The notes under the pieces were generated by a model. The model had not been told where the DNA came from. It made no database searches and saw only the letters and a program-made list of their open reading frames with translations. Position numbers and translations under genes: made by a program. Source: Calcarisporiella thermophila CBS 279.70 (Eukaryota > Fungi > Calcarisporiellomycota). Taken from it: a stretch of DNA of 64,000 nt. Below are positions 35,314 through 50,775 of this stretch, piece by piece; within the stretch, counting starts at the first letter, position 1; each line of letters starts with the position of its first letter. The DNA lies in assembly GCF_041956535.1 (NCBI RefSeq), contig NW_027192202.1, positions 134,515-198,514 of the forward strand, in the 5' to 3' direction.

Positions 35314-36285
35314 TTATGAGATGGGCTTGAAGTTCGAGTCGATTGTGTTAGCCTGGTCATTGATAGAATCGGCGGGGTTGCTCCGCTTGCCAATGGTTGC
35401 CGCGCCTTGATCCTCCACGTCCTGCTGGAGCATTTCTTGGACCATTCGCATCCTAGCAGCAACCAGCTCCTTCTGGCTCATATGCTTTGTTCGTTCTGAA
35501 TCCGAACGATATTTATGTTCGGGTTGGGTATGGGCGATCTCGCGCTTCTGGTAGGGGGGTCTTTTAACGGGGTAGGATCGCAGCCGTTGAGGGTAAAATG
35601 GGCGAGTTTGACGGTTCTGACGGTTCTGCCCTTCGCGATCCACTAGGAGCTCGAATCGTTTATCGATAAAGTGAGGTTTATGATAGCTATGATGCTTCCC
35701 GTAGGGAACATAAACAGGCTGGGCAGACATGCGCTGAGGTGCACCACCCGAGAAGAATTCATAGGCTGGGTCATATGAGACGCGCTGAGGATATCCCATA
35801 GGGTCATGGTGATCAGAATACCAGAAATCATCTTGGTAGTAGTAGCCCTCCGGACCCTGTTTCATAAGACTAGAATTATCGCCCGGCCCCGATGCCTTTG
35901 TGTTTGCGTTCGAATTCTCGCTGGACTGCTCATCCGAATTCACGGCCGAGTTGAACAAATCCAAGTGATCAAGCACATGGATATTATTAAGGGCATTATC
36001 TATCACACCACGTTTCATCTTTCTCCACTGTTTTTTGTAGATGCCTTCCCCGCCTTGCTTCGAGAGAACCGAATTGTCGCCTGGACCTGATGCTTTGGTG
36101 TTAGCATTACGATTCTCCGAATCCTGTGGATTAGAATTGACCATGGAATCTATTAACTCCAGGTGATCAATAAGATCCAAATTGTTGACGGCATTGTCAA
36201 GAATTCCACGACGTAAGTGCGCTGCACCTTGCGCGAGACTCGCGAAGAGCATAAGCGAGAGTGTTATACCAAGCGATGGTTTCAT
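35314..36285 (-). CDS. Secreted Kex2-type precursor with two 46-aa G(I/V)(L/I)D..NN..ENxNANT repeats
   Basis: Signal peptide MKPSLGITLSLMLFASLAQG; RR/KR sites directly precede two homologous repeats (starting 36207 and 36009); more KR sites downstream; intronless. Confidence 0.8.
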   Translation of the reverse strand: MKPSLGITLSLMLFASLAQGAAHLRRGILDNAVNNLDLIDHLELIDSMVNSNPQDSENRNANTKASGPGDNSVLSKQGGEGIYKKQWRKMKRGVIDNALNNIHVLDHLDLFNSAVNSDEQSSENSNANTKASGPGDNSSLMKQGPEGYYYQDDFWYSDHHDPMGYPQRVSYDPAYEFFSGGAPQRMSAQPVYVPYGKHHSYHKPHFIDKRFELLVDREGQNRQNRQTRPFYPQRLRSYPVKRPPYQKREIAHTQPEHKYRSDSERTKHMSQKELVAARMRMVQEMLQQDVEDQGAATIGKRSNPADSINDQANTIDSNFKPIS

Positions 36286-44394: not shown

Positions 44395-46927
44395 ATGAGG
44401 TTCATCGCTCTGACAATAGCTTACCTTGGGGCACTTATGCTCTCACAAGCTGCTCCCAGTGGAAAACGTCGCGATCTAGAGGACACTTCGACCGATGCAC
44501 AGAATGAAAGTAAGCTGGGCATCCTCAATACCAATATAAACTCGGACACGTACTATCATCATCACCACCATCATCACGATGACTGGGACGATGACCATCA
44601 CCACCACGATGATTGGGACGATGATCACCACCAGCATCACCATTGGGACGACGATTTCGTCAAACGTAAAATTCCTGTAGAGTCCGAAAATAATGCACAA
44701 AATGAGAGCAAGCTAGGCCTCTTTAACACCAACTTTAACTCGGGAGTATATTATTCTCACGATCACCACTATCATGATGATGATTGGGACGATGATCACC
44801 ACCACGATGATTGGGATGACGATGATCATCACCATCACCATCACCATCACCATCATTGGGACGATGATTTCGCCAAGCGTGAAGTCCCTGAAGAATCCGA
44901 AAGTAGTGCACAAAATGAGAGTAAACTTGGCATTGGCATCCTAAACACTAATATTAACTCGGACACACATTACTCTCATGACCACCACCATCATGATGAT
45001 TGGGATGATGATCATCACCACCACGATCACCNNNNNNNNNNNNNNNNNNNNNNNNNNNNNNNNNNNNNNNNNNNNNNNNNNNNNNNNNNNNNNNNNNNNN
45101 NNNNNNNNNNNNNNNNNNNNNNNNNNNNNNNNNNNNNNNNNNNNNNNNNNNNNNNNNNNNNNNNNNNNNNNNNNNNNNNNNNNNNNNNNNNNNNNNNNNN
45201 NNNNNNNNNNNNNNNNNNNNNNNNNNNNNNNNNNNNNNNNNNNNNNNNNNNNNNNNNNNNNNNNNNNNNNNNNNNNNNNNNNNNNNNNNNNNNNNNNNNN
45301 NNNNNNNNNNNNNNNNNNNNNNNNNNNNNNNNNNNNNNNNNNNNNNNNNNNNNNNNNNNNNNNNNNNNNNNNNNNNNNNNNNNNNNNNNNNNNNNNNNNN
45401 NNNNNNNNNNNNNNNNNNNNNNNNNNNNNNNNNNNNNNNNNNNNNNNNNNNNNNNNNNNNNNNNNNNNNNNNNNNNNNNNNNNNNNNNNNNNNNNNNNNN
45501 NNNNNNNNNNNNNNNNNNNNNNNNNNNNNNNNNNNNNNNNNNNNNNNNNNNNNNNNNNNNNNNNNNNNNNNNNNNNNNNNNNNNNNNNNNNNNNNNNNNN
45601 NNNNNNNNNNNNNNNNNNNNNNNNNNNNNNNNNNNNNNNNNNNNNNNNNNNNNNNNNNNNNNNNNNNNNNNNNNNNNNNNNNNNNNNNNNNNNNNNNNNN
45701 NNNNNNNNNNNNNNNNNNNNNNNNNNNNNNNNNNNNNNNNNNNNNNNNNNNNNNNNNNNNNNNNNNNNNNNNNNNNNNNNNNNNNNNNNNNNNNNNNNNN
45801 NNNNNNNNNNNNNNNNNNNNNNNNNNNNNNNNNNNNNNNNNNNNNNNNNNNNNNNNNNNNNNNNNNNNNNNNNNNNNNNNNNNNNNNNNNNNNNNNNNNN
45901 NNNNNNNNNNNNNNNNNNNNNNNNNNNNNNCACCACTGGGGATGACGATTTCGCTAAACGTGAGGTCTCCGAGGATTCTGAGGGGAGTGCACAGAATGAG
46001 AGTAAGCTCGGTATTGGCATCCTAAACACCGATATCAACTCGGACACATATTACTCTCATGATCATCACCATCATGATTGGGATGACGATCATGATCACC
46101 ATCATCACCATCACCATCACCACTGGGATGACGATTTTGCAAAACGTGAGGTCTCCGAAGATTCTGAAGGAAGTGCACAGAATGAGAGTAAGCTCGGCAT
46201 TGGCATCCTAAACACCGATATTAACTCGGACACGTATTACTCTCATGACCACCACCACCATGATGATTGGGACGATGATCACCACCACCACCACGATCAC
46301 CATCACCACCACTGGGACGACGATTTCGCCAAGCGCGGAATTCTTGACGGATCCGGAAATAATGCACATGTGGGTAGCCATATAGGCGTTGGAAACTCCA
46401 ACTTTAACTCGGACTCACAATATGCTGAGAATAACAATGCCAATACCTACTCAGATGGCAATTGGGATAACTCAATCTATCAGTATGATGGAGGTGAACT
46501 CGAGAAACGTGGCATCCTGGATGGATCCGGAAATAATGCTCAGATCGGCAGCCATATTGGTGTTGGTAACACTAACACTAATTCACATTCCAACCATGCT
46601 GAGAACAGCAATGCAAACACTCATTCTGAAGGGGATTGGAATAATTCGATCTACCAAGGCGATGACTGGGACGATGATGATTGGGATGAAGACGACTGGG
46701 ACGATTTTAAAAAACGAGGAATCCTCGATGGATCATTGAACAACGTGCAGCTTGGTAGTCATATTGGAGTTGGTAATTCTAACACTAACTCACATTCCAA
46801 CCATGCTGAGAACAGTAATGCAAACACCCATTCAGATGGGGATTGGAATCATTCGATCTATCAGGGGGATGATGACTGGTGGGATGAGGACGATTTTGAT
46901 AAGCGCAGAGCCACCGCTCGATCTTAA
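44395..46927 (+). CDS. Kex2-processed repeat protein (KEP) with His/Asp/Trp-rich and Asn/Gly/Ser-rich peptide repeats; spans an assembly gap
   Basis: Signal peptide MRFIALTIAYLGALMLSQA. Tandem KR-delimited units AQNESKLG(IG)ILNTxINSDT-(H/D/W-rich)-FAKR occur on both sides of the gap, followed by three KR-GILDGS units; stop at 46927. Confidence 0.85.
44473..46336 (+). repeat. Tandem coding repeat, type A (about 180-200 nt units)
   Basis: At least 5 unit starts visible, each containing gcacaRaatgaRagYaaRct..aactcgg and cac/cat/gat runs. Confidence 0.9.
45032..45930. other. Assembly gap (899 N) inside the tandem repeat
   Basis: Run of N flanked on both sides by the same His-rich repeat. Confidence 0.99.
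46337..46906 (+). repeat. Tandem coding repeat, type B (3 units GILDGS..ENxNANT..NSIYQ)
   Basis: Three near-identical KR-delimited units. Confidence 0.9.
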
Positions 46928-47337: not shown

Positions 47338-50300
47338 ATGAGCTCATCAAAAAACACCAATCCCCAAAAGAATAATGGGGTTGTGCTGGCTCGGGTAATG
47401 AAGGTGTTTGAGCACAATCATCTCTGTTGTTTTAATAGGATCTATTATTGAATTCACCAGGTATCCGGAGAGCTTGTTACTTATTCGCACACTCTTTTCG
47501 CCTACTGTGAGTACTTTCATCAGTATTATTTGTCTTCTTCTGGATTTGTTCCGCGTTTCTAGCATAATATTATAGCTTCTTATAGGCCATTTAGTAATCT
47601 TTTGTTTTAACTATTAGGCGCATTTTTTATTGCCCTCATCGTTGGATGCTACACTCACTACTACAAAATTGTCGAAAATGAATTTTATGGTTATCCAATA
47701 GTAAGCCTTTTTAATTTTGTTCCTTGAATATTATAAAGGATAAATTTTTCTCCAATTTTTAGGAATGGTTCCCTAGTGTTAGTGCAACTATTGGTGACCG
47801 CTATCCCGCGCGTGCTATTTTTCAAATTTTTATTGCTTTAACTTCGGGTAAGATTCTGTTCTGAGTAAAGGCATTTTCACTTTTCTACACTTATCCACTT
47901 TCTTCTAGGACCTCGCTTTGCCCTTGTTTTCCTTTGGTATCTTATCTCTGTGCGTAATAAGCCTGGAGCCCACGTCTGGCAGAAATCTTTATTGATTGTG
48001 GGGCTTCTACGCACTGTTGCATGCGGAGGCTGGGTCTACGTTACTTCTACAGATGACCATTTTCTGCACGACGTAGCCATGATAACTTATCTCGTGCTTA
48101 CCCTCCCTTGGATGGTAGGCGGGATTCTGAGCACGCCCATAGAACTCCAACGCTCGCTACGGATGCGCAAGAGGCTCTGCTACACATTTTTTGGAAGTTT
48201 AATACCTCTGGTTTACTTGTTTATTCAACACAAAGTACACCATGTACCTGGGGGTAAATTTTGTCCTTGTTATATTTTCTTTTCAGTATTTAACTCTGAT
48301 AATTTTAATGTAGCCTATACCTACTATGCATTCTTTGAGTGGTCTCTTATTTTATACGATGTTGCCTTTGATGCAGCTACTGCATTCGATTTCTGTCAAT
48401 TTGAGTTGAATATTGTGGATATTTCTGGCATCAGTTCAATGCCATCAAGTAATCAAGGGTAAGCACTCTAAAAAAATGATATATATGATGTGTCGTTTAA
48501 CTATTTTTATCATTTTAGTGCTAAAAAATCCTCTAGACTTACACCTACGCCTTTTGCGGAAATTCGTGGATTCGTGTCCGAGGTGTATTTGTGTAAGTAT
48601 ATACATATCATTATGCTTATACTTACTATTCTGGTATAAACTCTATACTCTCTTATGCACAGCTTTTGTTTTCTGGAGTATGTTGACATCACTTGCACTT
48701 TTAATTTGGTATTTTCCACTGTGGCATATGGGGCTTTCAGGATATGAAGCGTTCCTTTTCATCACTCTCTCACCTATGCTACTTGGTATTAACTCTCTCC
48801 GCAGAGTTGTCAGCTCTTACCGAGGATTCTTTCACCTTATCTCGCTTATATCGCTTGCCTCATACAAAATTTCCGATCCGACCAACCGTCTCACGGTTGC
48901 TGCCATTGGCCTCTCAATTAGTATTCTCACCTATACCGCCTCTTGGGTAGACCTAAAAGCACGCTCTGGTCGCCTTGAGCGAGACGCTATTGCTATTGTT
49001 CTCGGCCTCATTTTACATAATGTCGTGAAGTTAGCATGGTGGGCTAACAACCCCATTTGGCCCATCATGCATGGACCCAATGGCGGGCGCAATGGCCTCG
49101 GATTGGCACTCGCAGTGATTGCATGCATTGATTTAATAATTCGTGATTCAATGGTACCCTCTGTACGGATTGCATCAGACAAAACTCGTCCGAAAAAACA
49201 CTGGCTTAGTGCATCCTTTGGACTTGGTGCGCTTCTATTTGCACTTCACTCTCAACTTACCGATACGTCTGCCCTCATGCGCTGGGTGGTCGATGGATAC
49301 CCGAACACCGGCCCAATGCCTATTCCTTGGGCCCCCTTACCAATTGCTGCTATGGTTATCGGTGTCATGCTCTCCATGAACCGTCGTATAACTACTAGCT
49401 GGCTGTGGTATCTAATTGGTTGCGCTGGTAGTGCCATCCTTGTGCTTTATTCAGCTTGGAACGCATATTTTGGTGCCCTGCTTTTGACGATTTACCTTAT
49501 CTCAATTACCCCTGCGTTTATAATCTCTGCGTCAAACTACCCTCCTGGTCGTACCTTCTTTACTGCCATGATGTGGTACAACATTCTCTGTTTGGCTCAT
49601 GTGTGGGTTGTGGCTTATGCGTTCGTGCCGCTGGGTGAATATCTTCGAGAGCGTACTTGGGTTGTTGTTCTTATTACAATGTTGTCTATTGGATGGGGTG
49701 TTTATAATGCCAAGTCAATGCCCACTCCCAAAACCATTCAACTTAATGTTTCGAAAAGTGTTCGACGCTATGCGCGTGTAGTCTCCATAATACTACTGCT
49801 TTTATCGGGTGGCATTACAATGATGCGTGTATCAATGGCCAAAACACCAGCGCCCTACCACCCCGAGAATAAATCTTTCACCGCTGGTATTTGGACTATT
49901 CATTTTGCTCTCGACGATGATATGTGGGCAAGCGAGGTACGAATGCGAGATGTTATTAAAGAATTGGAAGTAGATGTGATTGGTGAGTATGCATCCATTT
50001 CTTTTCCGTATAACACTATAGTATTCATATGTGTTGCTAACCATTCACTTTCTTTCGTATATTTTTTTAAGGTCTCTTGGAATCCGATACGATGCGAATC
50101 ATCATGGGCAATCGGGATCATACTCAATTCCTATCTGAAGACCTAGGCATGTACGTAGACTATGGTCCAGCCACTAGCAAACATACATGGGGTTGCGCTA
50201 TGCTTAGCAAATTCCCCATTATCAACTCTACACACTATCTGCTACCATCACCAAAAGGTGAGCTTGCCTGCGCTATCCATGCCACTCTTGATGTCTATGG

Positions 50301-50775
50301 ACAACCAGTCGATTTCATTGTAAGCCACAACGGCCAAGAAGAGGATCTACTTGACCGTCAATTGCAGACACGTGAACTTTCACGTATCATGCGCGAATCC
50401 CCTAATCCATTTGTGTTTTTGGGTTATGTGGTGACAAAGCCTTTTGGTGAATTATATCAGACGATGGTCAATGACGGAAAGGTTCACGATATCGACACCT
50501 CTGATAGTTGGGATCGTTGGTGCGAATATATCTTCTATCGTGGACTGAAGCGCACTGGCTATGCACGTGTATCGCATGGAAAAATCACCGATACCGAGAT
50601 ACAACTCGGGAAGTTCCAAGTGTTGGATAATCCGCACACTTGGGAAGGCCCAAGTTACAACCGTATAGAAGAGAAAGATGTTCCCAATGAACTGCGATTC
50701 CCCAAGCAGTTTTATCCACCGGGAGTTCGTGGACATCGGTACCACGTGTTTGATGAGCCAAGATACTTCAATTAG
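47338..50775 (+). CDS. CWH43: CWH43 GPI-lipid remodelling protein (Frag1/PGAP2-like + PGAP2IP domains)
   Basis: Motifs [14 protein letters not shown]|[109 protein letters not shown]. Confidence 0.93.

Follow-up and report, generated by a model that had tools for sequence, protein, structure and literature searches.

A predicted Kex2-processed polyprotein of Calcarisporiella thermophila carries His/Asp/Trp-rich units related to an expanded secreted peptide module

We analyzed a stretch of 64,000 nucleotides (nt) from contig NW_027192202.1 of Calcarisporiella thermophila CBS 279.70 (phylum Calcarisporiellomycota), here called the window, and focused on an intronless gene of this fungus that is predicted to encode a secreted polyprotein, a Kex2-processed repeat protein (KEP). 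According to direct reading and translation, the gene spans positions 44395 to 46927 of the forward strand (+) and was read as a single gene broken by an assembly gap of 899 N. It starts with an ATG and a predicted signal peptide of 19 amino acids (aa) (44395 to 44451, +, from the translation) composed of a basic n-region, a hydrophobic core, and a terminal SQA. The signal peptide was called by inspection and from the same leader architecture in all of the ca. 20 paralogues described below. Next come a short pro-piece, APSG, and the first dibasic site, KRR (44452 to 44472, +, from the translation), with AP-x-x-KR standing at the equivalent place in the paralogues.

After the leader, the protein consists of repeats rich in His, Asp, and Trp (His-type units), all on the + strand and, where complete, delimited by translation and alignment. 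Upstream of the gap lie unit 1 (44473 to 44667, 65 aa, ending in VKR), unit 2 (44668 to 44880, 71 aa, ending in AKR), and the first 50 aa of unit 3 (44881 to 45031, direct reading), which runs into the gap itself (45032 to 45930, direct reading). Beyond it, comparison of unit ends identified the last 10 residues of a further unit (45931 to 45961; HHW..DDDFAKR, with an extra G), and this is followed by two complete units of 62 aa (45962 to 46147) and 63 aa (46148 to 46336) that share 97% protein identity and, by codon counts, differ at 24 synonymous positions. The tandem repeat has a period of 186. An alignment of five units revealed a conserved head, with an invariant AQNESKL that includes an N-E-S sequon and with NT-INS, and a tail in which the order of elements is a His run, DDWDDD, a second His run, and WDDDF(A/V)KR. 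Thus, the conserved head with its sequon and the poly-His tail punctuated by DDWDDD, both described in the initial annotation made from these letters, were recovered in the alignment. The same annotation had counted at least six KR-delimited units between 44395 and 46336; KR-delimited units do exist there, but only four His-type units are complete and two more are fragments flanking the gap. Arg is confined to the leader, the dibasic sites, and the last four residues of the protein (11 of its 13 Arg are in dibasic sites), and Lys to the dibasic sites and the invariant ESKL. The units begin with EVSE, EVPE, KIPV, DLED, or GILD.

The end of the gene had been placed at 46336, which turned out to be wrong, as the open reading frame (ORF) continues to a stop at 46925 to 46927 and includes three more units. 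These are KR/KKR delimited, Asn/Ser/Gly rich, and His poor, with Asp/Trp blocks at the end of the second and third. They match a module of ca. 50 aa with the alignment consensus G-x-x-D-G-S-x-N-N-A-H-V ... L-N-T-N-x-N-S-D ... E-N-x-N-A-N-T-x-A-x-G-x-x-N-N-S, at E values from 2.7e-22 to 6.8e-19 in profile searches, and all have its C-terminal half; we call them canonical-module units. Canonical-module unit 1 (46337 to 46510, +) has 58 aa, is His poor, and gave the strongest match (profile E 2.7e-22; 78.9 bits in hmmsearch). Unit 2 (46511 to 46717, +, 69 aa) has an Asp/Trp-rich tail without His runs, and unit 3 (46718 to 46906, +, 63 aa) an Asp/Trp tail, both located with the profile and hmmsearch. 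The translation ends in RATARS and the stop codon (46907 to 46927, +), and this C-terminus has no hydrophobic tail of the glycosylphosphatidylinositol (GPI) type.

The edge of the gap deserves attention. With the nominal 899 N, sequence resumes at 45931 with CAC CAC TGG in the upstream frame, but at 45937 to 45941 it reads TGGGG, where four other unit ends have TGGGA(C/T)GA(C/T)GAT. The extra G lies 7 to 10 nt past the gap edge and gives rise to an upstream-frame TGA at 45943 to 45945, with all downstream units in another frame, in which 331 codons are open. It is either a contig-edge error or a real frameshift; assemblies often carry one-base homopolymer errors beside contig edges. Provided that the gap length is right, there would be room for about four more units (899 nt at ca. 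189 nt per unit), as the initial annotation had estimated.

Between the two His-type units located after the gap there are 24 synonymous versus 2 nonsynonymous changes in 62 codons (Nei-Gojobori), and in all ten unit pairs the proportion of nonsynonymous differences (pN) was 0.01 to 0.16 versus 0.5 to 1.0 for synonymous ones (pS) by the same method. Since synonymous changes far outnumber nonsynonymous ones, the peptide sequence of the units is under purifying selection. His codons are mixed (31 CAT and 43 CAC), and therefore the His runs are not a slippage microsatellite. The gene is real and constrained, and its unit pattern exceeds chance in the placement of Arg, the 331 open codons after the gap, and the mostly synonymous differences between units.

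By definition, a KEP has a signal peptide and three or more internal repeats that are separated by KEX2 sites (PMC6339444). The gene described here has, after its predicted signal peptide, four complete and two partial His-type units plus three canonical-module units, each complete unit ends in KR or KKR and is otherwise devoid of Arg, and the genome contains six loci with the kexin P-domain (PF01483), all above the Pfam cut-off. The prediction of a Kex2-processed polyprotein thus agrees with the sequence, with a predicted signal peptide, three or more repeats, dibasic sites only at unit borders, and kexin loci in the same genome. Four of the P-domain loci form two pairs ca. 1.5 kb apart on opposite strands (C5:1110032-1112179 and C7:757755-759762), and another one (C19:558104) has two in-frame stops. 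In the processing route that we propose, the signal peptide would be removed first, kexin-type proteases of the late secretory pathway would then cut after each KR, KKR, or KRR, and a Kex1-type carboxypeptidase would trim the basic residues. The predicted products are at least five, perhaps about nine, His-type peptides of 60 to 69 aa (7 to 8.5 kDa) and three His-poor peptides of 56 to 67 aa. Cleavage of the units and release of the peptides are deduced from the arrangement of these sites. Our verdict is that the gene is most probably a KEP, i.e., of a known kind, with an unnamed peptide family and a type of tail not described in the two KEP surveys consulted (PMC6339444 and PMC7329392).

To place the module, the whole genome (28.2 Mb in 116 contigs) was searched with a profile whose alignment takes in the units of the window gene, a second gene in the window (35314 to 36285, -), and paralogues elsewhere. 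The profile search found 91 module copies, and hmmsearch over the fetched genes gave 98 including weak matches. They belong to at least 20 genes on ten contigs, all with a signal-like leader and KR/RR-delimited units. Among 82 strong modules, 76 are directly preceded by [KR]R, and in the other six a KR is one residue off or a single Arg follows the leader. Outside the window the family loci (L026 to L040) are found on contigs C2, C8, C9, C14, C20, C21, C23, C28, and C29. One member packs 12 modules into 860 aa (C9:240-243 kb), and some loci are clustered, with three within ca. 8 kb on C8 and two adjoining ORFs on C23. Because three members are broken by assembly gaps, these copy numbers are lower bounds. 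One paralogue is annotated as an uncharacterised protein of C. thermophila.

The second gene in the window (35314 to 36285, -; profile and hmmsearch) lies ca. 8 kb upstream of the His-rich polyprotein gene and codes for a paralogous secreted precursor of 323 aa with two canonical modules. Its modules are followed by unrelated KR-delimited pieces, one of them of the type ...RMRMVQEMLQQDVED...TIGKR, which recurs in family genes on C2, C8, and C20. On the other side of the polyprotein gene there is a gene similar to Cwh43/PGAP2IP (GPI-anchor remodelling; 47950 to 50775, +) that is split into the overlapping ORFs 48413 to 50146 and 50077 to 50775, which points to an intron or a shift of frame around 50100.

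The His-type units are related to this module along their heads, a kinship that had escaped the initial annotation. Aligned with hhalign, they matched it with a probability of 94.5% (E 7.9e-8) over columns 4 to 31 of both, and in hmmsearch they scored 8 to 17 bits with a match limited to the ca. 30 N-terminal positions. The C-terminal half (E-N-x-N-A-N-T-x-A-x-G-x-x-N-N-S) is absent from them, and the His/Asp/Trp tract stands in its place; therefore, they are a derived form in which this half was replaced. The His-type peptide would be a chimera of the N-terminal half of the module and a His/Asp/Trp tract. Similar tails appear elsewhere in the family. Runs of three or more His occur in the tail of 28 of the 98 modules, often with a W(K/R)R end, and several tails mix Cys, Asp, and His, e.g., GGHC-DDDD-C-HHHH-W before RR. 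Another member (P0035, C29:330897-331046, 149 aa) has a single secreted module after KR and then a tail of ca. 45 residues, nearly all of them His, Arg, or Asn.

To look beyond this genome, the profile was run exhaustively against 1.84 billion representative proteins, with 56 matches to the module at E up to 1e-3. Aside from those of C. thermophila, they are mostly proteins of 50 to 170 aa with one module each. Reference collections provided no name for it: in Pfam, neither the two halves of the window gene nor its paralogues or the bacterial homologues matched any family (E up to 1-5); NCBIfam had no model for the module, its sole match being to the bacteriocin-leader model TIGR01847 and below threshold; no PDB entry matched the profile (E up to 10); nothing usable came from the ESM Atlas; and literature searches with the motif strings and the organism found nothing about the module family.

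These relatives point to a start for the mature peptide. In bacteria, the module begins exactly at a signal-peptidase or a double-glycine cleavage site. In proteins of the Streptomyces type it starts right after an AxA signal-peptidase site, and three module peptides have a double-glycine leader, with a Peptidase_C39 ABC exporter located immediately downstream of one of them. In the Orbiliomycetes Orbilia oligospora and Dactylella cylindrospora it comes after KKR or RR. The N-terminus of the module, G-(I/L)-(I/L)-D-G, thus coincides with KR in fungi, AxA in the Streptomyces type, and the double-glycine leader. That three unrelated processing signals precede the same first residues independently supports a reading of the dibasic sites as ends of the mature peptides.

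We confirmed 16 actinomycete loci, including 13 from Streptomyces, one from Kribbella, and one from Actinokineospora, and among these 16 no neighbor besides the peptide gene was conserved. Similarity across kingdoms can be high, since an actinobacterial-type protein is 57 to 60% identical to C. thermophila modules, with ca. 22 consecutive identical residues. In the tree of 60 modules the deep forks lack resolution, and it therefore supports neither a single origin of the fungal copies nor a transfer in any one direction. Some of the loci have neighbors of their own. In a metagenomic sequence of actinobacterial type (L065:3320-7155), a 155-aa module protein is flanked by a PatG-like subtilase (domains Peptidase_S8, PatG_D, and PatG_C) and by an HsbA-family gene. 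Outside this case, the HsbA (hydrophobic surface binding protein A) family is known from fungi; none of its members was found in the C. thermophila genome. At L041:1369-4248 and L042:1963-4842, a double-glycine module is located between an unannotated gene of 392 to 440 aa and a C39-peptidase/ABC exporter that is split into two genes. To judge from the Uma2 and BrnT/BrnA genes close by, the genome may be of cyanobacterial type. Small secreted module proteins are also annotated in two plant assemblies. The copy of the grass Stipagrostis hirtigluma (L067:6001-6294) is deep within an 8.1-Mb contig, and that of Papaver nudicaule (P0048, on a 9.5-kb contig) is nested in a well-supported bacterial clade of the module tree and may be contamination.

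Structure predictions had little to say about the peptides. AlphaFold2 modeled a canonical unit from a 60-row alignment with a predicted local distance difference test (pLDDT) score of 52.7 and only a weak helix at residues 6 to 23, and a four-copy complex prediction scored 0.02, which is no answer and was counted neither way. Hydrophobic moments contained no alpha-amphipathic signal at 100 degrees. At 120 degrees, the periodicity of canonical modules was borderline (p about 0.07 to 0.09), as was a beta-like alternation in the His-type head (160 degrees, p 0.036). Neither the low-confidence model nor these borderline moments gave support to a display of the peptides on self-assembling fibrils through a beta-prone head, as had been suggested initially.

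Composition points to a different activity. The His-type peptides have 15 to 17 His, 16 to 19 Asp/Glu, and 2 to 3 Trp in 60 to 69 aa (unit 1, once trimmed of KR, has 16, 19, and 3, respectively), i.e., ca. 25% His and 26 to 30% Asp/Glu. Their isoelectric point is ca. 5, with a net charge of ca. -14 to -17 at pH 7 and ca. 0 at pH 5. With this composition, binding of metals would be chemically plausible, and metal-ligand chemistry seems to recur across the family in the His runs, the Cys/Asp/His tails, and P0035. Binding or buffering of divalent metals (Zn, Cu, and Ni) by the His/Asp tract outside the cell would be the most likely single activity, one to which we give a confidence somewhat short of even; a role in scavenging or buffering metals had been suggested in the initial annotation. 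As an explanation of the whole locus, a secreted KEP whose most likely activity is extracellular binding of divalent metals appears to be the best, and our confidence in it is slightly better than even. Several observations weigh against it. The 1 kb upstream of the gene contains no Zap1-type zinc-responsive element (ZRE) and no Mac1 or Ace1 motif, although these motifs are not validated in this lineage. The neighbors, the Cwh43/PGAP2IP-like gene and a transporter of the MFS type, are not metal genes. Most members of the module family are without long His tracts, which makes metal binding as such an improbable candidate for the function that the family shares. In the tail, codons probably do not line up as strict homologues, and conservation there concerns composition and motif order and not the exact sequence. 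Finally, the continuity of the gene across the gap is an assumption, and the extra G breaks the frame as assembled.

An unlikely alternative is that the peptides are surface active or self-assembling, like the repellents of Ustilago maydis or the chaplins of Streptomyces, with the module coating hyphae or surfaces and the His/Asp tail acting as a pH or metal switch (net charge ca. 0 near pH 5) instead of a scavenger. The Rep1 peptides, which derive from a KEP, structure the hyphal wall (PMC6339444), and the hosts of the module, Streptomyces, Kribbella, Orbiliomycetes, and Calcarisporiella, are filamentous and form aerial hyphae. The isoelectric point of ca. 5, the Asn-rich motifs at spaced intervals in the modules, and the weak beta-like alternation of the His-type head (160 degrees, p 0.036) would also fit. 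However, the modules are hydrophilic and Asn rich, not hydrophobic, AlphaFold offers only the low-confidence helix (pLDDT 52.7), and there is no Pfam match to chaplins (PF03777), hydrophobins, or HsbA. The HsbA-family gene that adjoins one actinobacterial-type copy favors a surface role, but it is a single case, without a counterpart in the C. thermophila genome or a conserved neighbor among the 16 actinomycete loci. The exporter context of bacterial homologues suggests antimicrobial or competition peptides, a bacteriocin-like toxin or signal whose anionic, His-rich tail would make it Zn or pH dependent, as in histatin-type or anionic antimicrobial peptides. In line with it, three homologues have a double-glycine leader, and one of these immediately precedes a Peptidase_C39/ABC exporter, an arrangement that is classic for bacteriocin export. 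One protein (P0027) comes near the TIGR01847 bacteriocin-leader cut-off (13.2 versus 15.7 bits), and the family is patchy, strongly expanded, and diversified, as expected of conflict genes. Nevertheless, we consider it quite unlikely, given peptides that are strongly anionic at neutral pH and have no amphipathic helix signal, Streptomyces loci where no immunity gene or conserved partner was seen, and the fact that C39 exporters carry nontoxic peptides as well.

Two other explanations concern the nature of the gene itself. Many KEPs are precursors of ribosomally synthesized and posttranslationally modified peptides (RiPPs) (PMC7329392), and the window gene could be one of the dikaritin/ustiloxin type, of which only a short core would be kept. 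This is hardly credible here, because the genome gave no match to UstYa/DUF3328 (PF11807) in a search that had no positive control and is weak on its own, the units are 58 to 71 aa long and conserved along ca. 30 to 50 residues with no short core, and no gene for a tailoring enzyme adjoins. It is also very unlikely that the gene is recently broken or an assembly artefact, with the extra G being real and only the part before it made, or with the array misassembled. The TGGGG run does yield the in-frame TGA at 45943 to 45945, the gap sits within the repeat array, three paralogues have gaps as well, and the gene is missing among the annotated proteins returned for the C. thermophila genome. On the other hand, the 331 open codons downstream have intact KR sites and module matches, the strong synonymous excess between units is present on both sides of the gap, and single-base homopolymer differences near contig ends are commonly errors.

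It is conceivable, though unlikely, that the module defines an undescribed cross-kingdom system of extracellular peptides. Actinomycetes would release it with signal peptidase, other bacteria from double-glycine leaders with a C39 exporter, and Calcarisporiella and Orbiliomycetes with kexin, and at least one grass genome also has it. In C. thermophila it would have been amplified to ca. 100 copies and repeatedly fused to His/Cys/Asp tails, and the window polyprotein would be the extreme form of a new class of secreted metallopeptides whose conserved head targets or assembles them, e.g., at the hyphal surface.

Thousands of KEPs are known, few of them with a known function. The expansion of the module family and its spread across kingdoms are the notable points here: a family nameless in Pfam and NCBIfam has expanded to an unusual extent in an early-diverging fungus that is thermophilic, and evidence from other kingdoms independently indicates the start of the mature peptide, with three processing signals before the same first residues. 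For one diverged member of the family, on which purifying selection is clear, metal binding through His and Asp is an idea with explicit chemistry that would be easy to test. Should the peptides bind metals, fungi would have a way of handling extracellular metals that is ribosomal and based on a polyprotein, distinct from siderophores and Pra1-type zincophores.

Compared with the KEPs surveyed before (Le Marquer et al. 2019, PMC6339444; Umemura 2020, PMC7329392), the window gene has the same signal peptide, three or more repeats, KR/RR/KK between them, and no other domain, and peptides from KEPs of early-diverging fungi tend to be longer (PMC6339444). It differs in that its repeat family has no Pfam or NCBIfam model and in number, with at least 20 genes and ca. 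98 modules of one family in one genome versus an average of 9 KEPs per Mucoromycota strain (PMC7329392). The text of the Umemura survey makes no mention of Calcarisporiella, and its motif types include only di-His, with the His/Asp/Trp tracts of the window gene not among them (PMC7329392). Rep1 of U. maydis is also a KEP, giving rise to many peptides tens of residues long that have a structural role on hyphae and that are unmodified and without an STE13 signature (PMC6339444); the window units lack that signature as well. However, the repellents are not His rich, the likeness is drawn by description and not by sequence, and the amyloid behavior known for Rep1-1 has no support in the window units.

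Precursors of the Saccharomyces MF-alpha-1 type, with units of about 13 aa, share the prepro-architecture, the KR-delimited repeats, and the processing in the late secretory pathway that is expected for the window gene. A pheromone precursor of the alpha-factor type was considered and rejected, as the units have 58 to 71 aa versus about 9 to 14 aa and no STE13 XA/XP dipeptides follow KR. The likeness to class II bacteriocin-type systems (Peptidase_C39 ABC) lies in the bacterial homologues of the module, which carry the double-glycine leader and adjoin such an exporter, whereas the fungal module is predicted to be released from a polyprotein by dibasic cleavage; we know of no toxin activity of the module. 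Like the predicted window peptides, Helicobacter Hpn, the salivary histatins, and the Candida zincophore Pra1 are small and extremely rich in His, and their logic is extracellular or one of metal buffering. None of them is known to be related in sequence to the window units, in which blocks of Asp/Trp alternate with the His runs and the whole tract is fused to a conserved head.

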